From Takakia lepidozioides (lineage: Eukaryota; Plantae; Bryophyta): 64,000 bases of DNA. The position numbers were made by a program, and so were the translations under genes. The notes beneath the pieces were generated by a model. That model saw nothing but the letters and a program-made list of their open reading frames with translations, ran no database searches and was not told the DNA's origin. Below are positions 336 through 60,400 of the stretch, in pieces (position 1 is the first letter of the stretch; the number at the start of each line of letters is the position of its first letter). The stretch is from assembly GCA_030704615.1 (NCBI GenBank), contig CM060734.1:45198001-45262000 (forward strand), read 5' to 3'.

Positions 336-2660
336 CTCGCCATCCTGAAGAAGGCAAATCTCATTAAGCTGCTCGTAAAGAGATGACAAAATATGTGATG
401 CCAATTCTGCCCCATTCGAAGCAGGGACAAATAGCTGGTCAGGATCAGGAACAGCATGCTGAACTACAGTCTGGAGGAACTCAGCCCCTGCAAAAACCCT
501 GCCCTCCCATGTGAAACAATTTAAAGATAAAATAAAAGCACAGGCTGTGTGCTATGTCTACATGCAACCTCCATGACGTCTAAGAAGGGCTAGTTTGCCA
601 GAGAGGGATGTTTCAAAAGAAGTTCGACATAATGAGTCATGATGTCTGATGAAAATTTGAAGGCACACATCTGATGAAAATTCAAAGCAACACAGCTCTA
701 ATCCTGACTCATCCAAATACAATTGACCTAAAGAAACTGGATCCTAAAGACTTCAGGAGAAATATGGATGTTGTAAGTAGACATTTTGAAGTTCAAATCA
801 AATAGGTCCCAAAGAGCAGAAAATTTTGACACAAAGCTCCTTGAGGCTAAGATTCAATTCCATGGACAAGTCCATAATTAAAGGAGCACTGCAGACGGCC
901 CTGTTTTAATAAGGAAACCAATTGGCACAAGACAGAGATACCTACCATGTGTGTATCTTGTAGTGATATCAACAGGTGCATTTATCAAAGCAGGTCCACC
1001 CTCCCTGCAGCTATTCTCACAGCGAATATACAAAATAAAAAATCATTTGCAACATTCTGACCAGAAAACACTTGAGAGTGACGGTTACCATGACATGCTT
1101 GCCAAGAGGCTCAAGAGGGTTACAGTAGTTCCAGCTCCACCCATCACCGCCTCCAGCTCCTTATCCAGTGCAGCCTTGCGTAAGAACTGTGTTTATGCCA
1201 ACAGAGTCACATCATGAACGCAGCAATCCTTGTGGCTCTTATGATGTACTGTTTAGCTCTAGATATTTTTGATAGCAGATTTTGCACAGATTGTTCAGTA
1301 TCTTGTCATAATTGAAAGTTAGCTGCTTAAATTCACAGGGAAATTGTATCACTCAAGGCTTTAAAGATGGGGTACGGTTTTGTACTTGCCGTAAAATTTG
1401 ACGTGCTTGATATTGAGGGTTGTGCGAGTGGCTAGGGTGTAACGAAGAATCTAGAACTTAACTCTTCCCAACTTTCCTTATACTTCAGCAACTAAATCAA
1501 ACCTAAATGGACAAAGACCAGTCTGTTGAGATGAAATGGCTAATTATTTCTCTTGTAAGGCATTGATACGAAAAGAGCTGAATTTTGTGCACAATATGAA
1601 AGAAAGGGCCAGGAACTGTATACATACTGAGAAATTCCGTAAGATAGTTTGTGCAAAGCCAGTGGCCTCTCAAGGTTTGGGTCTCCCGGCTAGTGCATTG
1701 CAATTGTAGGCATTCCAGGAAGGATAAAATAAACTGAGCAGGTTCCGTTCGATATTCCATTAACTAGAGTTCCAGAGTACAGAGGAGATATGGAGTAGGC
1801 TCAAGTCATATCTGAACTCCTGGTTGGCCGTGGGGTCTCTTGATACAGAGTAGTAGGGTCCTACCCAGCCCAAGCCCCAAGACCATGACATTTGCAAAAG
1901 CTGGCCGCAGTAAGAAAACAGAATAAATGGAACCACCCTACCAATCGAACCTACCACAAGTCGCATGGCCACAGCGTTTGCAAAAGCCTCGAGCGTTGGA
2001 AAGGCTTGAGGCCGGAATTTCAGCCAGCTCCCAGTGGTTTCCTCTGCTACCCTCTTCACAAACGCGTCCACTCTTCGCAATCTTGTTGCTGCAGCAATGA
2101 ATGGCACCAGCAGATTGGTGAGGCTGGACATTGACAGATGAGTGACATGGATCCCAGATTCAATGTAGAACTGCTGTCCCGTTGTATCCCATCGAAAGTG
2201 CTCACTGGCGAACCCCTGAAGCATATAAAGTACATCCTTGACCTGATATCGACAAAATCCCACAAGAAAAACTTGAATGGTTAGAAAACCAGGATAAAGC
2301 CACCAATAACTTCGAACACTCTGTTTCCACAATACCAATCAAGAGGGCCAAACAGGGCGTCGACAACAACATCAAACAAATTATCCTGTTCCATCTGCTA
2401 ATTCTCCGCCTGCGATGTTTAGGACCCCAAAGTTACACTCAACATACTACTATCCGAATTTACTTCTGAAGTTGGTACTTGGATAGAAATGTAGCTGAAA
2501 TCGAATCTATGCAAAACAGTATGCGTGTTGACAGTACCAGGGAGGCTTCAGTGGTTTGATGCCACCGCTTTGGAGCAAAGAACGGTAGACTGTTCGCCCG
2601 AATTCGACTAATCCGGTCTATCAGGGAGCCCACTCCCTCGTGGCCTGTTTGACTCGCCAT
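336..2660 (-). CDS. GCP5: Gamma-tubulin complex component 5 (Spc97/Spc98 family), 5' exons; gene continues beyond window start
   Basis: Exons 2660-2538, 2242-1955, 1186-1089, 498-336, all GT-AG with matching phases. Product: MASQTGHEG...TEASL|VKDVLYMLQGFASEHFRWD...IHVTHLSMSSL...PTLEAFANAV..|FLRKAALDKE...TLLSLLASMS|WVFAGAEFLQTVVQHAVP...ELASHILSSLYEQLNEICLLQDGE, colinear with the plant GCP5 N-terminus as I recall it. Confidence 0.85.
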
Positions 2661-9800: not shown

Positions 9801-12800
9801 ACCTCCAGTGAGGTGGTCTCAATAGAAATGAAATGAAATGGTACTCTATAACGGTGGTCTCAATAGAGTGGCCTTATTACCATAGAAATCGAGATAGACA
9901 TGTAATATGACAGCATGATCGGTGGTCACAATGTTTGTATACATTCTTGATTACAAAAATCTATTAATGTGTGCATGTGTGGATAGAGTAGATCTGCATG
10001 GCTGAATGCCCAAGAAGCATTAGGATAAAAGTGGATAATGGACTCCTAAGGTCAGCATGTCTGTTGTAAAAACCTGTGGGTAGAGCTTTATTTTGAGAGT
10101 GACAAGAATTTTGGGTGGTGGTTGTAGGTGGAGGAGCTGCGAAAGGAGAACCAGCACCTCAAGAAGACTTTGCAGAAGGTAAACAAGAGAGGAATGGCGA
10201 CTGTCTCAGAAGTTGTTGGAGACAAGCTATGAACCAGCAACGGAAGCATACTTGCAAATATTAAAGCAGGGCTTCATTGACATTCCTTTCGACAAAGGTG
10301 TCCACCGCTTGGACATCACTCACAGAACTCCATTGATCACTCCCAGGTTTCCATGTTCATCAGAGGGCTTGGGGTTCCTGCAGCAATCCCAATCAAAAAA
10401 CAATTACGTTTCTTGCTCCCAGTTGGCCCTCATGCCCAGGGAAGCAATTCCCATCACTCCTAGGAAACAATTGCCTGTCACTCCCAGGCTTCCAGATTCA
10501 ATGGAGGACCCGGGGGCCTTGCAGCCATCGCAATCAGAAGACATGGTACGCAGCGTCCGGGTTTCTCACAGTTTTGGTTATTGTGGGAGGTATGCTGATA
10601 AGAAGCACCCTTTTCATTAGTCTTCCCTTCCTTCTAGTGCCTGCTCGTACTCTATTCTCCCTCTGCCTCAACCCTTTTGCCATAGCGACAAGTCTGCACA
10701 TGCCATGCCCGTAATCGCATATTAAGATGGGCTTTAATCGTCTGAACCTTTTGCTTGTCAAGGGGATGAATTACCCTAAAAGCTTTGTTTTTGTTGTCTC
10801 AAAGTACATGTTGACTCACTTTTGTAATGCTGTTGGAGATTTACGCAGGCAGAGGAAGAGCCCCTTGCAATAATATTGAAGGAAAGGCCCCGTGGACCAT
10901 CACCTGAAAAGCGGACAAGGGCATCAGAGGGAGAACCACAAGCACTGTTGGCCTTGGCAAGGCCATCATCTGAAAGGCAAAGAAGAGATCCTCATTTAGA
11001 AAAACTGGAGACTAGGTTCAGAGGCTCATTGCCAGAGGGACGGACAGAAGATTCCCACTACTCAAGTTCACCAGAAAAGCGTGGACTGCAGGCTGTGCAT
11101 AAAGAAAGATTTGAGGAGATATCACCAAAAAGGTTGAGAAAGTCCAAAGGCATGAAGGTGATTCTATCATTGTAGCCACACTAACACTATAAATTGCACA
11201 GTAACCAGCCTCCAGCACAACCATAATAGTACTTAACTTCTCATGATTCTCTACGTCTCAGAGCCTCATGTAGAAGGAAAAAAAGACTTTAATTACGTCC
11301 AGAGAGGCCCTGACGGTCCATGAATGATAGAACCAGAAACCGTCCAAAAAAACATCAAAACCTCCTGCAGGCAAGCTGCCAGGAACTTCTTCACTGTCTG
11401 GACATTATAAAGGCTCTTTCTTGTCTCATGCAGACACACAGAGTGCAAGAAAGAAAGATAGGGAAGAGACTTTAGATTTCCACAGGGAACCCAACTGGGA
11501 GGGAATGTACTCCTAAGATGTAGCCTTGTGGCCATACACACCACGGCCAGTTTGGGCAGAGCAGACACTACCTTGTGAGGGGCTCACTCCTGTAGTGGGG
11601 CTTGGTCATCGAGGGTAGGTAGGCCTTTCAGGTCATCCTTAAGGTCCTCACCCATGTCACAAACTGGAAAGTCTTATGCCTGACTTTGTTTTGTTCGGAC
11701 ATTCGCGATGCTTGCAACACAGCCCTAGACACTTCAGCCTCCAAGTCAGCTTCATCTAGCAGGGTCAGTTCCTCCTAATACTCAGGTACTTCAAAATCTC
11801 CTCTACCCTTTTCGGCTGACTTGCTCTCTTTGAGCGCCAAAAGTCTAACAGAGAGAGAGATGTACTCATAAGACTTTGTTTGCCATAGCCTTGTGGCCAT
11901 AGACTGCGCGCCCGGTTTGGAAAAACATAGGGAATAGGCACTACCTTTGTAAGGAGCTCACTCCGGTAGTGTGACTTACCTTGTTATATATAATTAGCTC
12001 GGGCTTTCCAGGTATCCTGTGGGGTGAGCGCGCGCGAGAGAGAGAGTGGATTCTGTACTGACAAGTCTATCCATCATGGTACAGAGCTGGTTGGATGGAC
12101 ACCGAAGCCCCAGGAATGCTGAAGAACTTAAAGTGCAATTTGAGGCTGAGATGGCTGCTGTCCATTCTGAAGAAAAAAGGTAGCAGAGGATGACAATTCA
12201 CCGTTCAAAAAACTTGAGGTGTAACTGAAATAGTGTTCTCACAAAGAATAAAGTATCTTTAATACGTTGAAAATAGGTTGTATTTGATTGAATGTAGTTT
12301 CCTTTGCAAATGCAAGAAGACCTTGCTCAACAAATTCAAAGAAGATTGCATCTCTTCAGAAAGTTTTCAGGAGCTTTTTCTGTCACTCTCTTTTTGTGTA
12401 TGAATCTGTAGCAAGGCCAACCTAAGGTCAAGAAAGTTAATGTTTTCCTATGTCCTGACATGGTCATCTGTTTCACTCCCTTTGCATGTTTTGGAAATAG
12501 ACTTGAAAGAATGAAATGAAATGGTACTCTATAATGCCCGCAGAATGAAAGCGATTATAGTGGAGTTTTCCAGACACTTGCAAGTTTCTGTGACTGTTTT
12601 ATACCAAGGGGTAGGTTGATGCTGGAATTCTGATGTATGAGTTCATTTAGGCGCCAGAAAGCAGTTCAGCACTCCCAGGTTAAAGAGAAAGACAGAGAGC
12701 AAGCACAGGCCAAGAAAAAGTCCAAGAGGGTCAGGCGGGAAGAAGAGAGCTACATTCAAACCCAATTGCACCCAAAGTCAGGTGACAGTGTAAGTCTGGC

Positions 12801-15800
12801 AGTCTTCTCTTGTACTTCATAGTCAATTAAATATTCAATTCGTGGCTGAAATTAGAAGTTCCTAATTTTAGGAGGGCCTTCAGAGAGAACTGATTTAGAG
12901 AGTTCAGTTTTTCATGGGGATGCTACCTTCCTCTATGGATATGGAACATAATGCTGATGAAACTTCATGTCTGAAGCACTGTGGGGAGAAAATCAACGTG
13001 ATTCACATCTGGTGAACATTCCCTCTCTCCTGAGGGAAAGAATTATGCATTGAACAAGAAACAAGGTACAAGAACAGCTTGGGAGCCAAGTACCGGCACA
13101 TCACAGAACAAACAGAGCTCAGCTGGGTGCCACTGGCACCTAAGTCTGTCCTCAGCAGAGAGAACAAAAAACAAAGAGTTCTCAGTCCACCTCCACCAGA
13201 ATGTACTTTCAAATCTGAGTATCAGGTTTCCTTCTGTCCCTACCCTCAACATTCTTGGACTGTGCCCTAGAGGGAATCCAAGGAAATGGCTTGCAACGGT
13301 TCTGAGGTTTTCCTTGTGCTCTTGTTGGGGCCATGATGAAGATTGACATTGGGGTCAAACAGGGCTGCCCCCTCTCGCCTACCCTATTCGGAATCTACAT
13401 TGACGCCTTGGAAGTCTACATCTCAAAAAACCATGAGTTGGTGTGCCATTGGATGGAGGACGATGTTGCCCTTTTGGCACAATCTCCTATCTTCCTACAA
13501 CGCCATCTCGACATCTTGGAACAGTTCTCCAATGACTATGGGTTGCAAGTCAACCTTACAAAAACCAAGATCATGGTTTTCAATGGGCAGGCTGACCGCA
13601 GATTCTTCCTCAACAATCGGGAGGTGGAGATAGTCAAATCCTACCGATATCTGGGGCTGGTTATCCACTCCCCCAAATTCCACTTTGCAGCCACTGCCCT
13701 GGACAGATTGACAAAAGGCAAGGCAGCCTCCATCCGCCTTCAGGCCAAATGCAAGCAGATACACCTGCGCCACCCACCGACCAAGAAGTGGCTGTTTGAT
13801 AGCATAGTCACCCCAAGTGCCACTTTTGGTTGTGAATTTTGGGCACCTGCAGTCCCAGTTTCCTGGTGGGAAAACAATCTGGAACCATTGCAGTCATCTT
13901 TCCTCCAAGCAATGCTTGGCGCCAGAGGCACAACTCCATCGCACATATTGAATGCAGAATTCGCCTGTGTGCCACTCCAAACTGAGGTCCTCTTCCGGCT
14001 TACAATTTTCCTGCATAGGTTACAAGGCCTTCCCCCCAAGGGGCTTGTGGCCAGGGCCCTCACAACATCTATGAGACTCAAAAATGCAGGCTTCAAACAA
14101 TCCTGGTATGCCCGTGTGGATACCTTTTTTGAACGCCATGGACTCTCTATAGCTTCACTTTTGCCAGTGAACCCAGAAGAGGTGGAAATCACATCCAGGC
14201 ATGACCGCAACCAACTCATTAGAAAGGAGCTCATGGCATTACATGTCAGGAGAACTTGGAAGTTACCCAACCTCACAACAAAGCTCCATTTCTATCGAGA
14301 AACATTATTGGTTCTCCGGGATGATAGAATCTTGCGGCCCAATTACCTTTCGGCCTCTTTATCTCCTTCTCTCCTTCACTGTTTATTCAGTGGAACCCAA
14401 ACTCTCACTGATGTCTTTCACTATGAGGATCAAAAATGCGTGGCAGCCTACTTACACGAGGCCTTCGCCCTTAGACAATCGCTAGAACATTAATTGTGGT
14501 TTCTGGATTTGTTCCTCTCTCATGTTTTCTTCCATTTTGTCCCATAAGCTCTACGAGCTTTCCGCGGACGTTATAAAGCACCATTTCATTTCATTTCTCC
14601 TGAGGGCTTTGGGGCGGTTCAGGGTGGGCTCCCACAACCTACAGATAGAGACTGGCAGATGGGAAAACCTGCAGCGGGGGGACCGCCTATGTCCTGCTTG
14701 CACAGGGCACAGCCAGGAAATTGAAACTGAAGAACACTTCTTCTATTGCCCCCTATACTATGAGATCCGTGGGAGATTCCATTGTCTATTCCGTGGAACC
14801 CAATCTCTCACTGAAGTCTTCCAGTATGAGGATCAGAAATGTTTGGCAGCCTACCTGCACGAGGCATTCACCCTTAGACAATCACTCGAACAATAGTTCT
14901 TTTCTTTGACTCTGGTTTTCCTATTTTCTCTCATGTTCTTCCTTCCATTTTGTCCCATAAGCTCTATGAGCTTTCCGCAGACGTTATAAAGCACCATTTC
15001 ATTTCATTTCATTTCTCTCCACTTAACTTCCATCAATCTTTAGCACCTAGCATCTGTATCCTATTCCATGTAAGAAGCTACTCCGCAAACCTGAGGTAGC
15101 CCAGTCAATTGTTTGCAGGAAGACAATGAGAGGCATGCAATGGAGAAAGAGGATGAAGAGGTCTGCCTCTTGAGTTTACTTCTCACTCTGAAGTATATAG
15201 TAACAATGCTTATTTTTACTTTCAAGTTTATGTAGAGCTGTTGCTTTCATTGCTGCAAGAACGTGTTTCACATTTCCAGGAGCATTTGGAGGTTAAATTT
15301 GGTCTTCAAGAAATAGTCTTTTGCAGGCACACAAAACTGCTGAAATAGCTGAGTTAGCAGCCATGGATGTTGGAGAGGATGCACCAGCACTTCCTGTCCC
15401 AGAGAAACAAAGGTGGCTGAAAGAGCATCCATATGCTCCCATCCCATCCTTGTAAGCAGTAACATACCTTTGAAAACAAAATTTATAAATGGTGACTTAG
15501 TTTTGTATCATCCATTATCGTGACTGCTGCTGCCGTGTCTCCTTGCTGAATCTGAATTACTGGTGTGCTACCAAGTTGGATGCCCATCTCATGTCTACTA
15601 CACGTACCCTATTATCGTACGGAAAATGGTGATTGCTTGATGATGTTGTTGTCTTTCAGTCCACCCTTCGAACTACATACCATTGGAAAAGGTGACAGTA
15701 TTATAGTACCTAGATTAGAAACTTTGACTCCTGATGTGCTGTTTGTACCTCACACTTTCCAGGCCACATGTGGTGGCGAAGTACCCACATTCGCCCACAA

Positions 15801-18800
15801 TTTTCACTGTCAAGCATGAAGAAGTCTCCCATGTGCGTGTCCTTCCATGCCCATACTGGAACTTAATACATATATCCTTTTCTTTCACCTTTCATTACCT
15901 CACATTTGTTGGTTTTGCCATGTAAGTGCACCCTGAGAACTCTCTCTCGCAAGAAATTGAGATTGTGAAATCATACCGATACCTGGGTCTGGTTATCCAC
16001 TCCCCCACGTTTCACTTTGCAGTCACTGCCTTGGACAGATTGACTAAAGGTAAGGCGGCCTCCGTCCGCCTTCAGGCCAAATGCAAGCAAATACATCTGC
16101 GTCATCCCCCAACCAAAAAGTGGCTGTTTGACACTGTCGTCAGCCCTGCTACCATCTATGGTTGTGAGTTCTGGGCACCTGGTGTCCCTGTCTCCTGGTG
16201 GGAAAAGAATTTGGAGCCATTACAGTCATCTTTTCTCCAAGCAATGCTTGGCGCCAGGAGCACAACTCCATCTCAGATCCTAGGGACAGAGTTCGCATGT
16301 GTACCATTGCAATCCGAGGCCCTCTTCCGGCTTACAATCTTTCTCCATAGATTACAGGCCCTTCCACCCAAGGGGCTCGTGGCAAGGGCCCTCACAACAT
16401 CTATGAGGCTCAAAGCTGCAGGTTTCAGGAACTCCTGGTATGCTCGAGTGGACAGTTTATTTCAACGTAACGGACTTTCTACTGCTTTCCTATTACCAAT
16501 GAATCCAGATGAGGTGGACATCACGTCCAGACATGACCGCAACAGACTCATTAGGAGAGAGCTTATGGAATTACATGTCCAGAGAACTTGGACGCTACCC
16601 AATCTCACAACAAAGCTCCACTTCTATCGAGAGACATTCTTGGTGCTCCGCGACAATAGAATCTTGAGACCAAATTACCTTTCAGCATCCTTATCTCCTT
16701 CCCTCCTGAGGGCATTGGGGCGGTTCAGGGTGGGTTCCCACAACCTACGGATAGAGACTGGCAGATGGGAAAACCTGCAACGGGAGGACCGCCTATGTCC
16801 AGCTTGCATAGGGCGCAGCCAGGAAATCGAAACTGAAGAACACTTCTTCTTCTACTGCCCTCTATACTACAAGGTCCGTGGGAGATTCCACTGTTTATTC
16901 AGTGGAACCCAAACTCTCACTGATGTCTTCCACTATGAGGATAAAAAATGCTTGGCAGCCTACCTGCACGAGGCCTTCACCCTTCGACATTCGCTAGAAC
17001 ATTAATTGTGGTTTCTGGACTTGTTCCTCTCTCATGTTTCCATTTTGTCCCATAAGCTCTATGAGCTTTCCGCGGACGTTATAAAGTACCATTTCATTTC
17101 ATTTCATTTCTCAAAATTGTCTGATTGTAAGTCCTGCCCTAGGGATTGTTATTGAGAACACTGTCCGCAGCAATTTGATGAGCAACTGCGTGAGGAGCTC
17201 ACGAAGTTTGGAATCATGACAACCTCAAATGGCATCAGGTACGACTTTGTACCCCTGATCGGAGTCTTACCAGGAACTTTATCTTTGCCTTTCCTCGGTC
17301 CTGATTTTCTTGTCTTCCTTATTAGCAAGTATGCTCTTAGAAAATTGTGTGCATCATTGATAGGGTCTTATTCAAAAACCTGCCATCATTTTTAGAAGTA
17401 TACCCCTTGCTCTGAACTTCTCTTATAGTTGAAGCTAATTATGGCACTTGATTATAAACTCCAAGTCTGTATTCAATGCATTATGACAGCACACCTCATG
17501 TGGTTGGTAGAGTATGCAGTGATTCAGCATACACTTCTGCATCTTCAGCGTTAGAAAAGCAACGCACACAGCGCATATCTTCAATTCATGGCAGTGAGCG
17601 TCGCCTCATGGAATACGAGCGGGGTACTATTCTATGGCACACCCAGGTGGAACCTGCCTGATCACAACTATACCTGTCAAAATTTCTATATTGCTGCATT
17701 TGATCTCTCTTCTGATGTGATATGCTCAATGCACCCAGAACCATGCTCATTCAGGATGCATGGTGGTATTCATGATGGTGAGTGTTGGCTCATAGAATAA
17801 GAGAGGGGAACTGTTCAGTAGCCCATCCTGGTTAGAGCTACTTGGTCACAACAATACCCCTCGAAGATATGCTCAATGCACCCAGAACCATGCTCATTCA
17901 GGATGCATGGTGGTATTCATGATGGTGAGTGTTGGCTCATAGAATACGAGAGGGGAACTGTTCAGTAGCCCATCCTGGTTAGAGCTACTTGGTCACAACA
18001 ATACCCCTCATACACCCATTTCACAAGAACTTCTAACTTTTGTTCTCTTGCTCACAGATGCTCCAATTACCCGGAATTGTACTATCTAATATGTCACCTG
18101 GCTGCGACACTGAATTGCAGAGAGCTGTGCACACCAGGGATCTGGAGATAATTGAGGCTCAATTCGATGTGGCTACTGAATGTTCATCTGGGCACCAGAC
18201 GGACACTATGGATGGATCTGAATACAGTGATGACAATGAGGTCTGTACAACCCATCTTAATTACTGCTGTAGTTTCTTGAGCAGAGTGCCTAAGCCTGGA
18301 GTAAAAGAAAGGTAAGAAGATCAGATGTTTGAGCGACAAAACCTGTCTGAAGGTCTCTAACGTTTGCAACTTATCTTGCTTCGTATAGAGTGGGCATAGC
18401 AAGTACAACTCGAGCAGGAGCCACCAGTCTGATGGCAGCAACTGCTCTGATGACTCAAGGAGAAGTATGGACCAGAGGTTCCATAAAGCACATAGCTCAA
18501 AATATGAGAAAGGTCACACAAGCGGCAGAAGCAGTGGGAGAAGCAGTGGAAGTAGTGGGAGTGAGAGGAAGGAATCTCATAGGCATGGAATGTTGATAAA
18601 GGGTGACCATTCACGCTCCCCTAGACATCCTAAAGGGGGCCAGAGGTCTAAATCTTCACCAGATAGACGAGTACAGTATGTCTCAAAGGCTTTTTCATGG
18701 AAGCCCATAGAGAGGTTGAAGAAAGGGAGAATGAAGAATGATCCCCCATCAAGAGGGGAGCTGATTATTCCCCCGGTTGTCACTAGTGCTCCTGAGTCGG

Positions 18801-44942: not shown

Positions 44943-45209
44943 GGTCCTCCTTCCTCCCTCTTCTGGGAGGATACTTTTTGGCTCTTTTAAGCAGCATCAA
45001 TTTATTACTTGATCTAGTTTTCTGAACTGTTTTTTCACACACCAGACCACAGTAGCTCCGTTTGATGAAGGAATCTGATGATAAAGCATCAATATCTTCA
45101 AATGAGATAGGAATTCCTAGATCTTGGATGTCTAAAACTGTATACCCACACAACACTTTTTAAATTGCCTGGTCATCTCCTTTCAATCAGAAAGAGCATG
45201 GAGAAGAAA

Positions 45210-46394
45210 GAATGTCCTTGTAAGACTTTGTTTATCGTAGCCTTGTCCCCATGCCCAGTTTGAGCAGAACATCCCATGATGTAAACTAGTGGTTGGGGCC
45301 TGATTTCCTCTGGAAAGCCCTTCACACAAGCATCAATTTGATGTGTGTGATCTGCCCAGCAGCTGTAGGCTCAGCCTCGAAATTTTTGAAAGTTGGTGAA
45401 CAGAGGTGCATGGACTACATTCTTGATGCATCTGAAGAGGGTCCGAACTTTCTGATGAGAATACCCCAGACATTGCATCAAAAGTGGATATTGTTTTCAG
45501 GCTGCCCACACATCCGGCATTGACAACCTCCATTACCTCTCTGCATCTGTTATTGTTCAAAGGTAGACTCCTCACCATGAGTCTAAAACTCAGTCTACTG
45601 CCGAGGGAAGGTAGGTATGGAAAAGAGAGAATGTCGTCATAAGATGTTTTCCCGCTGCCCATGGGAAAGAGAATGTACTCATATGATGTTGGCCATAGCC
45701 TTGTGGCCGTAAACCCTGTGCCCAGTTCGGGCGAAACAAAAGGGAACAGAAACTACCTTCTGTGAGGGGCTCACTACGGTAGTGTGACTTTGATAAAGAC
45801 AATTAGTTCAGGTTTTCCAGATATCCTTTAGAAAGCCCTTCACACAGGCATCACCTTGATGTGTGTGAGCTGCCCAGCGAGAGGGCCAGGGCTGTAGGCT
45901 GAGCCTCCAGATTTTGAAATCTGGATCATCCTGAAGAGGGTCACTCTCTGGTGAGAATATCCCGGACAATGTATCAGAAAATGGATAGTCTTCAGGGCGA
46001 CCGCACATCCGGTTATTACAATCTCCTCTTCATCTTGGTATCTGTTTATTGTTCAAAGGTAGGCTTCCCTCCATGAGTTTAAATTTCTCTAGTGCCGAGG
46101 GTAGGTAGGCCTCCAAATCATCCTTAAGGTCCTCGCCGGTGTCACAGACTGGAAACAAGCTCAGGCAAGTTTTGTGCCTAACTTCATTGTCATCGGACAG
46201 TCTTTGGGCATCAGACATGGCTTTGGACACAACCCCCTCCAGTTCAGCTTCATCAAGGAGGCTCAATTCTTACTGTAATTTATATACTTGAAAATGTCTT
46301 CTACCCTTTTGCACCAAACCCATCCGCAAACATAGGAGCTGGCCTACAGAAAAGAATGTACTCATAAGACGTTGTTTGCCACAGCCTTGTGGCC
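45210..46394 (-). mobile_element. Stack of 5'-truncated LINE family B copies, all in one orientation
   Basis: Family 3' ends at ~45212, ~45631, ~45673 and ~46356; decayed LKFKL..GSLPLN..CG.PE..HF remnants at 45300-45610 and 45790-46320. Confidence 0.85.
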
Positions 46395-46408
46395 CCCTAC
46401 AGAAAAGA

Positions 46409-47920
46409 TTGTACTCATAAGACGTCGTTTGCTGTAGCCTTGTGGCCATTGACCCTGCGCCCAGTTTGAGCGGAAACAAAAGGGACAGAACCTACCTCTG
46501 TCAGGGGCTGACGTTGGTAGTAAGACTTACCTTCATATATAGAATTAATCCGGGTTTTCCAGATATCCTCTAGAAATCCCTTCACACAAGCATCAATCTG
46601 TTGTGTGTGATTTGCCCAAAAACTAGGCCTCAGAAGGGCTTTTGGCTCAGCCTCGAGACTTTCAAAGTTGGTAAACAGAGGTACAGGCACAATTCCCTTG
46701 ATAGATTTGAAGAGAGCGTCTCTTTGGTGAGAGAACCCCGGCCAGTGTATCAGAAAATGAATACTGTTTTCAGGTTGCCCACGCAACGGGCAATTGCGCT
46801 CTCCCTTTCCTCTCTGCTTCTGTTTGCTGTTCAAAGGTAGGCTTCCTGCCCTGAGTTTAAATTTCAGTCTAGTGCCAAGAGTGGGTAGACCCTTGAGGTC
46901 ATGCAAGATGTCCTCCCCCATGTCACTGACTGGAAACAAGTTCAGGGAAGTTTTCTGCCTAACTTCATTTTCATCAGACAATCTCATGGCAACAGACATG
47001 GCTTTGGACACGACAGCCTCTAAGTCAGATTTATCTAGCAGGGTCAAGACTTGCGGTTCCAGGTCCAGGTCCAGGTCCTTGAGAATCTCTTCTACTCTCT
47101 TCTGCCAGGACTTAGCCAGTTTGACAGGGTGGTCCTGCTTCCAAGATACAGAGTCGATTAACTTAGGATATCTGGTGTTGGACATATGTTGCAACTGACC
47201 CCACCATCTGACCTTGAATTCATCTCGTCGGGAGCTTAAGGACGGAATGCCAAACTCACCCCGAACAGCCACATTGGCTGTTTTGGAGCATGCTGACATA
47301 CACTCCTTAAGCACCCCCACTTGAATGGATTCTAGAGACTTAGCCTGGTTGGAGTTATCAACCCATATTGCAGATCCGTACTCCAAGGCAGGTCTAATAA
47401 CGCGACAAAGCATGGTTTTCTTAACCTCAGAGTTGACCCCTCTGCAGTGGAAAAATTTAGTGAGCCCCAGAGCTTTGCCCTTGCCAGTTTGAACAACTTT
47501 CCGGATATGTGCATCCCAATTACAATTTGAGGAAAACTCAACGCCCAGGTAAGTGTAGGAAGGGAAGACCGGGATCTCTTGGCTACCCCACTGCCACTTA
47601 AGATCACTTCCTCCCTCTCCTCTGTCGTTGAATGCTACCACTGCACATTTGCTGACATTAGCCTATAGCCCCCAAAGATCAAAGTATCTCTTCGCGCAAT
47701 CAATCAACTCCTGGAGATTGGTTGGAGTCTCCCCTATGCCTGCGAAGTCATCTGCAAACATAAGGGCTGGTATGGTGGTATCACCCACCCTTAACCCAAA
47801 TCCCTCACTTTCCACATCCTCGAGTAGTTGATTGATGAAAACATCGAAGAGCAGAGGGGAGAGAGTACATCCTTGAGCTACACCTTGGTCTATGTCAAAG
47901 AAGTTGGACTTCTGTCTGTT
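46409..47920 (-). mobile_element. 3' half of a full-length RTE-like LINE (family B): RT C-half and 3' end
   Basis: NRQKSNFFDIDQGVAQGCTLSPLLFDVFIN...MFADD...YTYLG...LEYGSAIW...; one in-frame stop; TSD copy at 46395-46408. Confidence 0.93.
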
Positions 47921-48399
47921 AAAGTTGATTGTTCAGCTTCTCCTGTGGTAATTTGGGCAATTGGCCTGGCGTCCTTGATGTTTGACTAGTTGGTGACTGA
48001 ACTTGGGGTTCCGTTGAGTTGTCATGTTGATGACAAGTTTACTTATTGGAATAGGAGGTTTCTCTAAAAGGCAGTGAGTTTCAAACTGTAGTTTTGCAAC
48101 TTGAACGAGGGAACTGCGCTGACAGGATATGGACTAAATACTCAAAGAAGCTTCAATTGAGCAGCACCTATGGCTTGAATTGAAATGAAGTTTGTTAGTG
48201 AGCTCATTATGAATGGTATTGGATGTTTGCTGCAATGCACATCAAAACTACAGCTGAACCTGGAACTAACTGTTGTGAGGGGAAGCATCAGGACCACTCC
48301 GTGGTATGCAGAACAAGTGCACTAAATGTAACTGCATACATCGAAGTATTCCAACAGAGATGCAGTGAAGGAGACCAAGCCATCCATACAGTAAACAAC

Positions 48400-51300
48400 T
48401 GATCCGTATATACGATAAGATAGCCCTGGACCCTAGGCCTGAATCTAGGACAGATTGAAAGATTCCTGAAAAATCCCAGGCCCGGGTCCAAGTCTCACTT
48501 GCAGGTTCCCTTACGTTCCCATAGGATACCCAGGCCTGTGGGTTTTTGAGGAATAAAACCTTGAGACATTGCATGTCTGGGCTATGGAATCTTTCAATGT
48601 ATGGCTCTTTTTCCATTCGTGGGTCTGAATTCTCCTGCTCGTGCTCACATGGAAGTCTTCTTGCCCTCTCTCACTCTCTCTCTCTCTTTTCTGTAGGGTT
48701 TTCCTCAAGGTTTACACAAGACGAGCAAATTCTATACACGGGGTAATTGTCCCCAAGCTGTCAGATGGACAATCTATCCCTAAGTGTGCAGAGCCTGAAC
48801 GTCCTGTAACTGAAGGTTTTGGTACTCTGAATGGTTTACCAATCCTCAAAGTCTACACAAGACGAGCAAAATCTATACACGGGTTAATTGTCCCCAAGCA
48901 GTCAGACGGACAATCTGTCCCTAAGTGTGCGGAGCCTATACGTCGTGTAACTGAAGGATTTGGTACCCTGAATGGTTTACCAATTCTCAAAGTTTACACA
49001 AGACGAGCAAAATCTACACACGGGGTAACTGTCCCCCCTTTGCAGAACGGTTGGCCATCCAGGAGCAATCACAAGCTACCTAGACGACAAACAATTCATA
49101 TGCAAAGGGCTGGCTTGTGGCTAGGCACTTTCAATTTCTCAGGGTTGACTAATCAAAGGAAACAACTCGAAGTGGCATAAGTTCTTCAGGCCAATAACAT
49201 TCAGATTTGTGCTGGTCAGGAGACATGGGAAACACAGGATATTGGTTGGAGATATGAATGGGTATAAGTGGACGGGTAAGATGTGTACTCTCAAGGCCGC
49301 CTCTGCCAAACGCGGCCAAAAAGGGGTTGGATTCTTTGTCTGCGATTTCTTGTTTGATAATTGTGAAATTATCAACAAGGGTTTGAGGTATGAGCATACT
49401 ATCTGGCTAAAACTGAATCTGAAGGGCGTGAATACGAAGGACCTCTTTGTGGGTTGTGTATACATGCCCACAGAGGGGACCCTTAGTGTTGACGCAGACA
49501 AAGCCTTCGAAGATGTAAAGCTGGACTGTGCTTCATTCCTTGCCAAAGGTCAGGTGGTTCTATTGGGTGACTTCAATGCCCGGGTGGGCAAAGGTCTCCA
49601 TCAGGACAATATCATTGGGCCTTTTGGTGAGGACAAGCTGAATTCTAATGGCAGACGGTTAATTAACTGTCTGGAAGAGCTTCAGCTTTTGACCTTGAAT
49701 AACAGGACAAGAGGTGACCAAGTGCAGTGGACTCGTGAGAAATCCCAAACTGGGGAATGTTGCATTGTGGACTATATCATAATGGACAAAAATTTGTTTC
49801 CCCAGTGTGCCAATGTGTTGATCGACAGAACTGATATTGGTACCTCCGACCACTTCCTGGTTTGGACTGAGATCAAAAGGTGTTTTCCCAACACCAAGAG
49901 ATCTGTGAAACGTTCGATTCGGAAGTGGCGCATAGAAAAGTTCCATAATGAGGAGGTCAAGGCTGAGTATGTCCAGGCCTTGCAAGAGGCTCTCCCTCAT
50001 TTTGTCCAATCGCTCCAAGAACTTCAGTCTCGCTCTGACAACGCAAGAAATGAAGTCGAAAGAGCAGTGGACTCTTGGGAGAGTTTCGTTTCCTCTGTGG
50101 CTGACAAGATCTTTGGGAGGAAACTAATTGTCTGCAGTAGAGCTGTTAATTGGTGGACCAATGAGATTAAACTCAAGATAGCTGAGAGATGAGCCCTCTA
50201 TAAAGAGTGCTGCAATTTGAAAACCAACAGAGAATTGTGGGCGAGGTACTACCAGCTCCGTAAAGATATCAATCAGCTTGTTAGGTCTCAGAAGAAATTA
50301 TACTGGGACAAGTTATACAGTGAAATAAACTCAAACCACCATGGTGGTAATGACAAGAAATTCTGGTTGGCCCTTCAACGTTTGTACAAGCCGAAAAATG
50401 GTCAGCAAGTACAAGCGCTGAAGACTACTAAAGGTGCAGTGGTGACTTCATCGGTTGACATTGTCAAAACCTTTGAAACTCACTACAGTATCCTTGGCAG
50501 AACTTCTAGGTCTAACAGTGAGGGGTCTTCTGCTGAATGGAGGGACACAGTTGGAAAAACTGTTCCTATGATGCAAAACAGCCCTGATGAACTGGAGTAT
50601 ATTTCAATGGCTTATAAGGCTCCCATTAGTTCTTCTGAGATTTGTGGAAGCAATTGAACATTTAAACGGATATAAAGCTGGTGGACCTGATGGTATAGTC
50701 AACAAGCTTATCAAGCACGGTGGCGATCCCATGATAGAGGCCCTAGTTCTCCTCTTTAACCTAACCCTTTTGCCGGCGACAGGGGGTCATTGTCAATCTA
50801 TACAAGAAGGGTGACAGAGAAGAACCGGGGAACTACCGTGGCGTCACGCTCCTCAATGCTGTTGGCAAGACATTCTGCAGAGTTAGAAGTTACTCGTCTC
50901 GAGGTTGATCTGGAGTCTAGAGGTTGTTTCCACGAAGGCCAAGCTGGCTTTCGGCGAAACAGGGGCTGTGTGGATCATATCTTCACTCTAAGCCAGATTA
51001 TCCAGGGAAGGAAAAAAGAAGGGAAACCCACTTATGTTTTTTTCCTGGATGTCAAAAAGGCTTATGACACAGCGTGGAGAGATGGCCTATGGTTCCGCCT
51101 CTGGTCTTGTGGGATCAAGGGAAAGATGTAGAGAGTTGTCCACAACTTGTATGCTCACACCAAAAGCTGTGTCACTGTCAACCCAATCAACCCTTAAAGA
51201 TGGAGATGATGGTGAGATACCGCAGCACAAATTTCGCAGCACAATACTTGAAACCGTTCTAAGTCTGCTAACTCCAAATTTTTGTTGTAATTGCTGCAGT

Positions 51301-51794
51301 TCTTCCCTTCCAACTTCCACAGATAGCAAAAATGGAACAATAGTAACTCCACAAATCCGAAGTCAAGTCCAAAAAACAAGTATTTAATGAAGAGGGGAGA
51401 AAACAGCCTATCACTATCACCCTCTGCCTGTTTGTTTCAAATCGGGGTCGACGAATCGGCACCTTGCTCCATCTCCACAAGCAGCCGGAGAGCCTCATGC
51501 CTTAAATCCGAATCATCGATCAAATCCAATTGATCCGTATATACGATAAGATGGCCCTGGACCCTAGGCTATAGAATCATTTTTAGGAATCTGTCCTCGG
51601 GCATGGGATATTTCAGGAATCTTTCTAGCCTGGTCCAAGTCTCACTTACAGGCCACAAAATGTTCCCTTACGTTCCCATAGGACCCAGGCCTGTGGGTTT
51701 TTGAGAAATAAAACCCCGACACATTGCATGTCCCGGGCTATGGAATATTGTCCCGGGCTTTGGAATCTTTCAATGTATGGCTCTTTTTCCATTC
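48400..51794. mobile_element. Probable MULE-like element broken by the inversion; long terminal repeats at 48400-48618 and 51531-51794
   Basis: ~220-260 bp repeats ending GGAATCTTTCAATGTATGGCTCTTTTTCCATTC. They are direct now but inverted once 47921-51183 is flipped back. The flanking 9-mers CAGACCCAC / CCTACCGAC match 6/9. Confidence 0.65.
48699..51182 (+). mobile_element. 5' half of the same LINE (family B): 141-bp repeats, APE endonuclease, RT N-half
   Basis: GTFNFSGL, QETW, GDFNAR, VDYI, SDHF (APE); GPDGI, NYRGVTL, QAGFRRNR, FLDVKKAYDT (RT); several stops and frameshifts; TSD TCTTTTCTGTAGGG at 48685-48698. Confidence 0.93.
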
Positions 51795-51904
51795 CCTACC
51801 GACTCTTACACTTCCCAACCAAGCAATACCACCTAACATGTCTACCAAGGACTGTGGCATCCCCGTCCCACAGAAGAAAAGGAAGCAACCACCTGTGTGT
51901 CATG

Positions 51905-52000
51905 AAGAAATGAAATGAAACATTCTCCATGACATCCACGGAAAGCTCAAGGAGCTTGTGGGACAAGAGAAAGCATGAAATAAGAAAGAGAGAGGGGCAC
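51905..52000 (-). mobile_element. Old 3' end of LINE family A
   Basis: GAAATGAAATGAAA...TCCACGGAAAGCTCAAGGAGCTTGTGGGACAA is the reverse complement of the family A 3' UTR and tail. Confidence 0.7.
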
Positions 52001-52188
52001 AAGAGAAAGGAGAATGCCCAGATTGCAAGTCTCAACTTGGAAGTCCATTACTCTCCACAATGGAAGTGTATGAGGTCAGGCAATGAGAGAAGGAGCAGAA
52101 CATAGCCAAGCTATCAAGAACTGAAGGAGGCATGAGCACTGGAGCAAGAGCAGCAGAGAGTGCAGGAGTGGTGGCATTACGAATTGTG

Positions 52189-54480
52189 ATGCAGCGGGTG
52201 TCCCAGGTGGCCGGAAGGGCTAATCGCCCTGCCTCCGAGGTTGCATTTCTTATCTTGTTCTCATTCTGAATAGGTTTTGTGAAAGTTGCTTGGGGCTCTG
52301 GGGATTGTGGCCTGGTCTATGGAAGCGGATTTTGAAGCCATGGCTGCTCGGATGCCCACCGGTGGTTTACACAGAATCGTCCAAGACCACTTGATCACAA
52401 CCATAAGCGCAAAATTGACGCCCTTTGGATTGAAGCTGGGCCGAAGCCTCCTTCGGCAGAACCAGCGCTGGCTGTCATGATACAAGATCGAGCACAATCT
52501 GGTTATGGTGTCAACAAGGGCTCTTATGGAGATGTTAGAACACTATGTAAGGCAGGACACTTGAAAGAGGCGTTGCACATTTTGAACAAACAAGGCACTT
52601 CGGCAGACTCTTATACTTATGTCTGTCTCTTGCGGGAGTGCATCAGAATTGAAAACCTGAAACTCGGAAAACAGGTGCATTCCCACATTATTCAAAGTGG
52701 ATTCAAGCCGAACCTGTTTCTACTCAACGCCCTTGTCAATATGTATGCAAAGTGTGGGAGCCTGGCGGATGCACGCCAAGTGTTTGACAAAATTGGCAAA
52801 CAAGATATGTTTACATGGAATATAATGATAGCAGGATATGCCAAGCATGGCTGTGGTAGGCAGGCCTTCGAGCTCTACCAGCAAATGATAGGGGGAGGGG
52901 TGACGCCCAACAAGGTCACCTTCATTTGTGTTCTCAAGGCGTGTGCGAGCTTGGCCGCCTTCGAAATGGGCAAACTGGTCCACGCTGACATCATCAAAGC
53001 TGGAATGGGGCCAGATGTGAATCTGGAGACTGCCCTTGCTGACATGTATGCCAAATGTAGAAGCATGAAGGATGCACAGCAAGTGTTTGATAATATGGCT
53101 CAAAGAAATGTTGTCTCCTGGAGTGTCATGATTGCTGGATATGCTCAGAATGGGTCTGGTATAGAGGCTTTTGAGATGTATGCACAAATGGTACGGGAAG
53201 GGTTTATGCCTAACAAAGTTACGTTTGTGTGTGTTCTCAACGCTTGCTCCAGCCTTGGAGCCATGGAAAAGGGCAAGGAGATTCATGCTGCCATCATCAA
53301 AGCTGGAATCGGGCCAGATCTTATTCTGGATACTGCACTTGTTGACATGTACTCCAAGTGTGGAAACATGAAGGATGCACGGCTAGTGTTTGACAGTATG
53401 GCTAAGCAAGATGTGGTCACATGGAGTGCAATGATCACAGGTTACGTTCAGCATGGGTGTGGTATGGAGGCTTTCGAGATGTATGAGCAAATGATACGGA
53501 AAGGAGTGACTCCTGACAAGATCACATTCATTTGTGCTCTGAATGCGTGTGCTAGCCTGGCAGCCCTGGAAATGGGCAAAGAGGTCCATTCTGACACCAT
53601 TAAATCTGGAATTGCCCAGGATTTCATTCTGGAGACTGCACTTGTTGACATGTATGCTAAATGTGGAAACATGAAGGATGCTCGTCAAGTGTTTGACAAT
53701 ATGGCTAAGCGAGATGTGGTCTCATGGAGTGCAATGATCACAGGATATGCTCAGCACGGGTGTGGTAGGGAGGCCCTGCAACTATTTGAACGAATGCAAC
53801 AGGAAGGCTTGACGCCAAATGCTGTCAGCTTTGTATCTGTCCTCTCTGCATGCAGTCATATGGGCCTAGTGGATGAGGGCTGTCACTACTTTGAGTCCAT
53901 GAGTCAAGCCCATGGCCTCAACCCTACTCTGGAACATTTTGGCTGCATGGTGGACCTTTTTGGGCGTGCAGGGCGGCTGGATGAGGCAGAGGACCTCATT
54001 GACAAAATGTCAGTTGAACCCGGTGCTTTGTTGTGGAAGGCATTGCTTGGTGCCTGCAGAATTCATGGCAATCTGGAAGTATCAGAGCGTGTGGCAAAAC
54101 GTCTTCTCAATTGGGATCCACTGGATGGTGCAACTGGTGTGCTGCTACAGAATATTTATGCTGCTGCCAGCAGCTGGGATGATACAGCGAAGGTGACAAA
54201 ATGATGCAGAACAGAGGTGTCACCAAGGAGCCAAGGTGCAGGTGGACTTCCGGATGCATATATGTGTTGCAGAAAAATTGCGTCCACAAATGAAGGAAAC
54301 CCACGCCGAGCTAAAGAGTTGTCTTAGCAAATGAAGGAGGCTGGATACTTGCCTGGCAGATAAATTTTGTTGTACAATGTCAAGGAGGAGCAACAGTGTT
54401 TCTCTCTTTGCCTCCAAAATGAGAAGCTGTTTGGCCTGAAACCTCTCCATGTCATCAAGAACCTTCAGGTGTGTGGTCAC
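52189..54480 (+). pseudogene. PLS-class PPR RNA-editing factor: intact 575-codon core (52477-54204), broken N-terminus and decayed E+/DYW domain
   Basis: Four 303-nt PLS triplets (MYxKC at 52741, 53044, 53347, 53650); E motifs HFGCMVDLFGRAG, WKALLGACRIH; frameshift at ~54201 before MQNRGVTKEP; DYW relics MKEAGYLP, QNEKL, KNLQVCG; in-frame upstream ATG at 52189 with TGA at 52267 and 52333. Confidence 0.85.
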
Positions 54481-57447: not shown

Positions 57448-60400
57448 TCACTGTGGCATTGTTGTCTCCACATACACCCCAATTTTTTGAGTCTCTAACC
57501 AGGATTTGACATCAGGTCCAGATGCCACCAACCAATCACTCCTGTCTAAACTCTCTTCAAAGGGGGAATTCATCTCCTTCAATCGAGATGCAATCGCAGC
57601 ATTCAGCCGTGGTTCGTCTGAACCCCTTAGTCGACCAGCCCCTGTCTCAATAATGAACTTCTCAGAGAGCTCTTGTCCTTCCCGAGCTGCAACACTGATG
57701 GAGGATAGCCAGCTTAGAAGAGCACAGTGCGCAGCACTCACAGACAGTGAGCGCAGGTGTAAGGCCCAAAAGAGCACTGATTTTGATTGAAGACCAGGAT
57801 AAACTCCCAGATTATCCAAAATTGAGAGGATTTCAAAGGCACGGTCATGCAAGCCCTTATTCCAGCAAAGGTCCAACAATGAATTGCAGAACGGTTTGTG
57901 AGCCTCCTCTGCCACCTCACCTAGCAAGGCTTGAAACTCCTTCTGTACTTCATCAACAGAAAACAAAACTTCCCCGATCTGTCCCACTAGATTGTCCAGC
58001 CTTGCACTAGCTTTCCGAAGGCACTCCCGCACCAGGCTACTCTCCTCGTTTGTTTCGCACGAAGTCAAGAGACTAAGCACTGCTCCACATAATCGTTCAT
58101 CTGGCTTGCAATTGGACTTAACCATTTCATCAAAAAGCTCTACAAGTTTATTGTACTCCTTAGCACTTCCACATGCCCAAATAAGTGAGGTGTAAGCCAT
58201 GACATCTGCATCATAGCCAGCCTCCACCAAGCAATTGAAAGTACTTTGAGCCTCAACCACCATGCCCTGTTTTGCGTACAAATTTAACATGTTTTTGTAG
58301 GTCCAGTCATTGGGCTCGAGCCCTGCATCTGCCATCTCTCTCATGAACTGCTCCCCTTCTTTGACTAAGCCTCCCTCCCCGCACATCTTTATGAGGGTGT
58401 TGTAAACGGCAGCATCACATATCACACCCTCTTGTTTCAATCGTTTGAAAACATTCAAGCCATCCTCCACATTTCCTGCCCTGCTATGAGTCTCTATAAT
58501 AGTGCTCAATGTAAAAGCAGTGGGCTTCACCCCAGTCTTCTCCATCTCCTCAAAGATTTTTGTGGCCTGGTGTACCTTCCCCATCCGACCCAGTAGAGAA
58601 ATCAAAGTGTTGTACACAACCGAGTCAGGCTGTATTCCTGACCTTTTCATCTCTCTGAAAACCATGACAGCTTGCTTTGAGTTCCCTGCCTTCCCATATA
58701 TGTTCACCATAGTTCCATACGTGATTTTGTCAGGCTTCCACCCAGCCCCCCTCAAACGCTCATAAAGCGCCAGTGCTTCATCAAAACGTCCAGATCTCCC
58801 ATATACATCTATCATGGAGCTGTATGTTACTTCATCGGGTATACAACCTGCCTCATGCATTCTGTTGAACCATTTCAATGCGTCGTCCTGATAAGATAGC
58901 AGTAAAAACTCTGTCAGAAAATAGTTTTGTGATGAAGAGACCAAAAACATGAAGAGGTGTCAATTCTTAATAACTTAAAAAGTAAGTCTGCAGAGGAAGT
59001 TCAAACCTGATTGTTGCAGCGATTTGCACAACTAATGAGAGTGCTGTAAGTGAAATTATCAGGATGGACACCTGCCCTAATCATGTCCTCAGCAATCCCT
59101 TCCGCAAGTTTCCACTGGCAACCCCGACGCAGCACTTTAAGCATCACATTGTAAGTGAAGAGATTGAGACTTGAGCTGTCTTGGCTCTGCAACCACCTAA
59201 AAACAGCAAAGGCCATTTGCCATCTTTCCAAGGTATTCAGCAGCGTGACTATGTCCCTTGAATTAAGATTTCCCTTCCAGTCCTCCATTGCCATGACTAC
59301 TCCCTCCTTGCTCTCCTCTGCATCTTTAAGCCTGCAATTGATAATAAAAAAACCAAAACCTAATTAAGGGCACACAGGAAATTGTGTTTCCTTGCAAGAA
59401 TTAGTGCAAACATATCAAGGACAAAGAAACATTCTCTTTCCCTTCGTGTCATGAACTCAGTTACCTGACAATATCATCACAATAAAGCCCTCAGAGTACA
59501 GGAAGAGGGGTTGCTTGCAGTCATAAACTCTGCTTGACGATGCCAATAATCCGCACGAGTTGATATTCAGAATCACAGTGGCCATACCATACATGAGACC
59601 CACAGGGGTATTCACATTGCTGGGCTGCCATATTCTGAATATGAACCCCTTGGAATATGCTTAAAAAGCTCCAATTGGACGTATCTATCAATTTTTTCTC
59701 TTGCGTCCAGCTAAAGTACAGATCTTTCTCGCAAGCAGGACATCCTTGGCTCATTAAACGAAATTCAGATGATCACAGATAATTTACTGCAATTCGTTTT
59801 GCAACCGGGGTGTCCTCGTCCCCTGGCATTTTCTCCCTTGTCTCATATTAATAAACAGGTTGGATAAACCCCCGTCCCTGTGAGGATTTGCAGCCCATCT
59901 CTCCAAAGGATTCTCACAGCGAGTCCATTGTCATGCCCAAGTTAGAGGTCTGCCAGCGGTTTTACACGAATTTGGGCACCTGCACATTTATGTTCTATAG
60001 GGGGAAGCAGGTTTGGCAAAGTTCCTCCTTCTCTTCAATCACATCAAACGAAAAAGGGTTGCTCATATCTTACAGATCAAGCACTTCTCTCACAGCGCTC
60101 GAATGCCGTGGTCTCCACGCGTCCAGTCCACTCGAATCCACCCCCTTCAGCCTATTCGTAGAGCGTGCTTCTCTGGGTGCACCCTCAACTTTTTCCAATC
60201 TTCGTGGACTAAGGCTTGACTTAAGCACCCTTTTGAAGGATTCAAGGTTCAGCAAGCGCAATTGTTCGCGGAGGGATTGACTTTGATTACTGACAGCAGG
60301 TTCACTGCCATTATTGCTGGGGGAAGGGGTTTGAGGCCCGGCCTGAGGTTCCTGCTTACACAAACTGTCACCGCTGCAGCTCACTGTCCTCCTGTTACTA

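Follow-up and report, generated by a model that had tools for sequence, protein, structure and literature searches.

The 64,000-nucleotide stretch of the Takakia lepidozioides genome analyzed here (contig CM060734.1, positions 45,198,001 to 45,262,000; called the window below, with all positions counted from its first letter) contains a long interspersed nuclear element (LINE) whose two halves lie in opposite orientations, the 5' half on the plus strand and the 3' half on the minus strand. Beside the LINE lies a probable small transposon bounded by repeats. A preliminary description of the region had proposed that an inversion of about 3.26 kb split the LINE and probably also this neighbour. 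All strings that it quoted were found in their places, and the neighbour is probably split by the same 3.26-kb flip.

The two halves of the LINE

The 5' untranslated region (UTR) of the LINE includes 2.4 tandem units of 141 bp at 48702-49036 (+), and the open reading frame (ORF) opens near 49101 (+) with MQRAGLWLGTFNFSGL.... An APE-type endonuclease was found in the 5' half at 49209-50189 (PF14529, E 4.1e-08, plus PF03372). It sits upstream of the reverse transcriptase (RT) within one LINE ORF. The RT itself is divided between the two halves: RVT_1 matched 50790-51128 on the plus strand with profile positions 34-97, and 47666-47920 on the minus strand with profile positions 111-182. With its endonuclease, its RT and a target-site duplication, the element is, as classified from sequence, an APE-type LINE (non-LTR retrotransposon). 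The 415-aa C-terminal region of the 3' half is without a Pfam match. This region has LINE-like relatives, namely three proteins (P0001-P0003) and neighbours in a protein atlas that carry RVT_1 or zf-RVT, and a metagenome scan for its relatives found none. The RT matched R2 and L1 ORF2p chains with similar, weak scores, and searches of the protein atlas and the PDB did not assign the LINE to a clade. The LINE is old and dead: three in-frame stops and four frameshifts disable the 5' half, and a single in-frame stop (47663-47665) was found in the 3' half.

The two halves abut exactly in the RT. The plus-strand translation stops at ...TKSCVTVN, the last codon being at 51180-51182, and the minus-strand translation starts with NRQKSNFFDIDQGVAQG from 47920 downward. 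Each LINE piece was searched separately against two references: P0003, a 331-aa relative from another organism with 39-49% identity, and a solved R2 protein (9nl2_A). Residues 2-56 of P0003 aligned with the plus strand at 51015-51179 and residues 59-328 with the minus strand at 47914-47072, leaving exactly two P0003 residues for the N and the R of the window at the junction. When the 17-aa and 84-aa pieces were joined with one N by a local script, the alignment with P0003 was gapless at the junction; with two N, a 1-residue gap appeared. In the R2 protein, residue 106 of the plus piece corresponded to chain position 525, placing the junction N at 550, and residue 8 of the minus piece corresponded to chain position 557, placing the junction N likewise at 550. 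In 9nl3_A, the two LINE pieces placed it at 600 and 601. The agreement between P0003 and the R2 protein indicated that the RT was cut once, in a stretch about the size of one codon.

The join had been described as seamless. It is so when AAC is counted once and the filler C is removed, but not for a flip of exactly 47921-51183. That flip yields ...GTCAAC-C-AAC-AGA..., with 4 extra bases and a frameshift, because AAC is present at both junctions together with the filler C. The breakpoints are thus placed closely, and the word "base-resolved", used of them previously, holds only within 3-4 bases.

The outer ends of the LINE are marked by the 14-mer TCTTTTCTGTAGGG, which occurs as a 14/14 inverted pair exactly at both ends. 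The chance of such a placement is about 5e-7. Three further copies of the family in the window gave independent evidence for the 3' homology end, ...TTATGAGTACA(A/T), and the register of the 141-bp repeat in the UTR placed the 5' end to within a few bases. The 14-bp target-site duplication of the preliminary description is present in full at both LINE ends and inverted, but its 13-mer core occurs once more, as the reverse complement, at 46343-46355 (TCTTTTCTGTAGG). A diverged neighbouring copy, LINE-B (46266-45667, -), likewise has a doubled 3' end, and the two CT-rich tails there resemble each other. These tails are similar inside one LINE copy and unlike between copies; they therefore look target-derived, and the site looks re-used. 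Judged by these strings, the copy-specific 14-mer ties both LINE halves to one insertion site, and this is weakened neither by the third 13-mer nor by the likeness of the 5' junction to the UTR unit described below. Together, P0003, 9nl2_A and the inverted 14-mer pair supported the earlier proposal that a single LINE insertion was broken at one codon and that its 5' half was flipped with 778 bp of upstream flank.

Other copies and remnants of the LINE family were observed in the window. In the doubled 3' ends of the split LINE (LINE-A) and of LINE-B, the second unit is short (39 or 28 nt), and a CT-rich tail specific to the copy follows each; this suggests that one CT-rich target may have been used repeatedly. 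A head-to-tail stack of 5'-truncated LINE 3' fragments occupies 45199-46447 (-) and includes 46266-45667 and 45614-45299; 46290-46342 (-) is a possible further degenerate remnant. Another 3' fragment of the family was found at 11612-12018 (-). At the 5' end of the split LINE, the final 9 nt of the 14-bp duplication together with TTT (48690-48701, TCTGTAGGGTTT) match the UTR unit TCTGAATGGTTT at 48826-48837 in 10 of 12 positions. This likeness may reflect a microhomology that formed the 5' junction, or chance. A different LINE family is present at 13.3-17.0 kb, with pieces at 13333-14490 (+, RVT_1) and 15926-17002 (+) that show 23-24% identity to P0002/P0003.

The repeat-bounded neighbour and the surrounding genes

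The neighbouring element is delimited by two repeat arms, R1 and R2. The preliminary description had reported these repeats at 48400-48618 and 51531-51794; they are real, and we extended them to 48396-48618 and 51527-51794. Identity between R1 and R2 was 71% with gaps and 82% over aligned columns, and the last 40 bp of the sharp end were identical in 39 of 40 positions. As assembled, the arms are direct. Un-flipping the segment between the breakpoints turns them into inverted arms with the sharp ends facing outward and restores a repeat-bounded element of 1309 bp, with arms of 223 and 268 bp. This pairing gives a modest independent point for the inversion.

With one sharp end and one fading end, R1 and R2 look like the terminal repeats of a DNA transposon. 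Mutator-like elements (MULEs) have long terminal inverted repeats (TIRs) and a target-site duplication of 9-11 bp. When duplication lengths from 2 to 12 were tried at the ends of the restored element, 9 bp was the best (6/9), 5 bp gave 4/5, and the others reached half or less; the single-test P of the 6/9 match is about 0.01, before correction for the lengths tried. A match at this level agrees with arms that have diverged by roughly 20%. No inverted partner or further copy of R1/R2 was found within the 64-kb window, nor any other copy of the internal halves of the 1.3-kb element, even at word size 7, and a metagenome scan for the arm terminus returned 0 matches. Across the restored junction of the element there was no ORF or protein remnant, just short meaningless ORFs, and no transposase. 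The earlier reading as a MULE with TIRs thus gained from the arms, which become inverted after un-flipping, and from the candidate 9-bp duplication, but not from any transposase or other copy. By geometry only, the element is plausibly a non-autonomous MULE.

Two other identities were considered for R1 and R2 and rejected. As long terminal repeats of a small LTR element, they would have an adjacent primer-binding site or polypurine tract, and neither was found next to them; their similarity also fades at one end only. As short interspersed nuclear elements (SINEs), they had no tRNA and no Rfam match in 45000-53000. The arms are otherwise collinear apart from a 28-nt stretch that is reverse-complemented between them (R1 48457-48484 vs R2 51598-51625, 93% complementary) and lies between short inverted GGACC/GGTCC sites.

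Two intact-looking pentatricopeptide repeat (PPR) genes, at 52477-54204 (+) and 57451-58950 (-), mark the window as plant DNA. The one starting at 52477 is the gene nearest to the inversion, 683 bp past arm R2, and has an E motif at its C-terminus. Near the start of the window, the ORF at 1763-2338 (-) matched the N-terminal domain of gamma-tubulin complex components (PF17681, E 5e-07) and is probably one exon of a host gene. The features of the inverted region are listed in Table 1.

Table 1. Positions of the features at and around the inverted segment of the window.
Feature	Position	Strand	Remarks
39-bp LINE 3'-end remnant, then third 13-mer copy	46343..46394	-	adjoins the split LINE on its downstream side
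3' copy of the 14-bp duplication	46395..46408	-	reverse complement of TCTTTTCTGTAGGG
LINE 3' half	46409..47920	-	second RT part (RVT_1 profile 111-182), C-terminal region, 3' UTR
AAC codon, shared with 51180-51182	47918..47920	-	3-bp duplication or overlap at the LINE breakpoint
Inverted segment, 3263 bp	47921..51183		778 bp of former upstream flank and LINE 5' half
Filler AAA, left junction	47921..47923	.	attributable to neither partner
8-mer GTTGATTG	47924..47931	.	inverted copy of CAATCAAC; within the inverted segment
Unique non-coding DNA	47932..48395	.	when un-inverted, left internal part of the 1.3-kb element
Repeat arm R1	48396..48618	+	sharp outer end ...GGCTCTTTTTCCATTC at 48618; inner similarity fades
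66-bp spacer from R1 to the LINE target, CT tract at its end	48619..48684	.	includes a candidate 9-bp duplication (48619-48627)
5' copy of the 14-bp target-site duplication TCTTTTCTGTAGGG	48685..48698	+	
LINE 5' half	48699..51182	+	5' UTR repeats, ORF, APE endonuclease, first RT part (RVT_1 profile 34-97)
Filler C, right junction	51183..51183	.	
8-mer CAATCAAC	51184..51191	.	outside the inverted segment
Unique non-coding DNA	51184..51526	.	right internal part of the 1.3-kb element
Repeat arm R2	51527..51794	+	sharp outer end as in R1, at 51794; differs from R1 by an additional 20-bp tandem copy and a small internal flip
Second candidate 9-bp duplication CCTACCGAC	51795..51803	.	6/9 vs CAGACCCAC (reverse complement of 48619-48627)

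The junctions and the origin of the inversion

The left junction reads ...CTGTCT GTT / AAA / GTTGATTG / TTCAGC..., and the right junction reads ...CACTGTC AAC / C / CAATCAAC / CCTTAAAG.... The layout is A-x-y'-B'-x'-y-C, where x is 3 bp of the LINE, y is 8 bp of the flank, and the filler is 3 nt and 1 nt. Of 20000 junction pairs drawn at random from this window, 0.9% shared, within +-15 nt, a reverse-complement string 8 nt long or longer. The 8-mer pair, which the preliminary description had noted, is indeed present in inverted form at both breakpoints, but at this chance rate its weight is limited; as a sequence feature it is suggestive, not compelling, and the scars were taken as typical end-joining. 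Staggered cuts, as proposed earlier, are possible: the layout fits them, but duplications of 3 and 8 bp with filler could equally come from ordinary end-joining or chance. A second cut by the LINE's own endonuclease was considered and rejected. The string TCTTTAAGG^G near 51192-51201 resembled the primary target, but this likeness sets a nick of the bottom strand against one of the top strand and disappeared in a like-for-like comparison (by eye).

We infer the following order of events and mode of breakage and rejoining. A CT-rich target, separated by 66 bp from a 1.3-kb non-autonomous element with long inverted arms, would first have received a roughly 3.99-kb full-length LINE with a single ORF (APE endonuclease and RT) in minus-strand orientation, and this insertion would have created the 14-bp duplication. 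Later, two double-strand breaks would have occurred, one at the RT codon ...CVTVN/RQKS... and the other in the internal region of the neighbouring element. If the 3.26-kb segment between both breaks was then rejoined in reverse orientation, the joins would have kept the inverted duplications of 3 bp (AAC) and 8 bp (CAATCAAC) and the fillers of 3 nt and 1 nt as scars of end-joining.

The same arrangement would be seen if the 3.26-kb block had been mis-oriented in assembly or polishing and the true order were un-inverted. No sequence feature points toward mis-orientation, the window is free of N and gaps, and both junctions carry short duplications and filler, which is typical of biological end-joining. 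A block of 3 kb is also shorter than typical long reads, and two concordant false joins would be unusual. An assembly artefact is thus unlikely, and we infer that the order is correct as assembled. The family re-inserts locally, with 3' fragments stacked at 45299-46394 and another at 11612-12018, so two unrelated fragments of one family might have come to lie head to head by chance. However, 3'-truncated copies are not a product of retrotransposition, the truncation points agree within 3 nt of about 4 kb, and the copy-specific 14-mer is common to both halves while the tails of other copies differ. Such a coincidence is extremely improbable.

An inversion could also have arisen during retrotransposition itself. 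First-strand cDNA would have halted at the RT codon; about 0.75 kb upstream, another DNA end would have primed at that codon of the same RNA and copied it to its 5' end, and the freed 0.75-kb flank fragment would have been joined in reverse. Consistent with this, the halves share 3 nt at their inner ends (j ~ k), as expected under twin priming, and the observed joins have a compatible strand polarity. There is also precedent in L1 local flank inversions and in twin-primed cDNAs at separate ends (bioRxiv 10.1101/2024.12.14.628481). This route, however, needs a three-way join that nevertheless left the 5' junction normal and the 14-bp duplication perfect. The second break, AAGG^GTTGATTG^TTCAG, is unlike the primary target, CTCTC^TCTTTTCTGTAGGG^, with nick types matched (by eye), and the putative primer end and the RNA share no microhomology; we regard the route as having a small chance. 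Twin priming leaves no gap between the inverted 5' piece and the 3' piece, and it places the duplication outside the inverted piece. The inverted 5' part beside the 3' part, with j ~ k, would suit the classic form. If the twin-primed RNA carried 778 bp of the 5' flank of its source locus (5' transduction), the order flank / inverted 5' half / 778 bp / 3' half would also be as expected, with the 778 bp as the RNA 5' end. However, 778 bp of non-LINE DNA (47921-48698) separates the halves, and the 14-mer adjoins LINE position 1 instead of the inverted part's internal end. The DNA beside 51184 has no match to what comes after the LINE 3' end (46408 or 46342); the composite therefore lacks a duplication of its own. 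With 5' transduction, the pairing of R1 and R2 would be mere coincidence. Both forms were rejected because of where the 14-mer lies and for lack of a duplication beside 51184, and we consider twin priming of either kind very improbable. The earlier statement that the structure is not twin-priming is thus upheld for the classic form by the 778 bp between the halves and by the 14-mer at LINE position 1.

We concluded that one LINE was probably split by a real inversion made after its insertion and re-joined by end-joining. The earlier term "post-insertion" is accordingly our favoured one, with a minor share left to each of integration-coupled inversion and assembly error. Several points weigh against this conclusion. 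The ancestral order is deduced from this single locus. Disabling lesions number seven in the LINE 5' half vs one in the 3' half, a difference that is not significant (binomial P ~0.09). The 13-mer occurs a third time, so the 14-bp target-site duplication is not a simple pair, and the 3-bp and 8-bp duplications are far shorter than the 46 bp to 1.9 kb of the staggered-break model.

The 3.26-kb flip is a neatly resolved, ordinary micro-inversion scar in a transposon-rich stretch. The split transposon offers a clean worked example of a micro-inversion rebuilt almost to the base, with the 3-bp and 8-bp scars and the filler included, and the locus is usable as a marker for accession comparison or for an assembly check. 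It presents neither a new mechanism nor a new element type, and no gene was hit. If the inversion was instead made by integration, it would be a germline, fixed example of LINE-driven local rearrangement from a non-seed plant; such rearrangements are so far known mainly from human L1, as studied in cell models and in tumours.

Comparison with known systems

The neighbouring element resembles non-autonomous Mutator-like elements in its long arms after un-flipping, its best-conserved termini, its size of about 1.3 kb without an ORF, and the 9-bp length of its best candidate duplication. It differs from them in that the duplication matches in only 6/9 positions, no transposase is present, and the arms are only about 71-82% alike.

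Staggered breaks in Drosophila left duplications of 46 bp to 1.9 kb at inversion breakpoints (Ranz et al. 2007; PMC1885836). The inversion described here has the same A-x-y'-B'-x'-y-C layout: each breakpoint sequence is present once outside and once inside the segment in opposite orientation, and no long inverted repeats lie at the breakpoints. The duplications here, however, measure 3 and 8 bp, and the joins also contain 3 and 1 nt of filler. The Drosophila inversions are also chromosomal in scale, whereas this one spans 3.3 kb.

L1 integration can invert local flanking DNA, as seen in experimental and cancer data (bioRxiv 10.1101/2024.12.14.628481). In those cases, as here, DNA beside a LINE insertion is inverted and the joins carry end-joining signatures. 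The flank alone is inverted there, whereas here the LINE 5' half is inverted too and the 5' junction is normal. The 5' inversions of LINE-1 by twin priming (Ostertag and Kazazian 2001, as cited in bioRxiv 10.1101/2024.12.14.628481; PMC2837659) are similar in that the 5' part of the LINE is inverted relative to the 3' part and the inner ends nearly coincide. The structure in Takakia lepidozioides differs from them in that 778 bp of genomic flank is inverted as well, and its duplication lies inside the structure, at LINE position 1.

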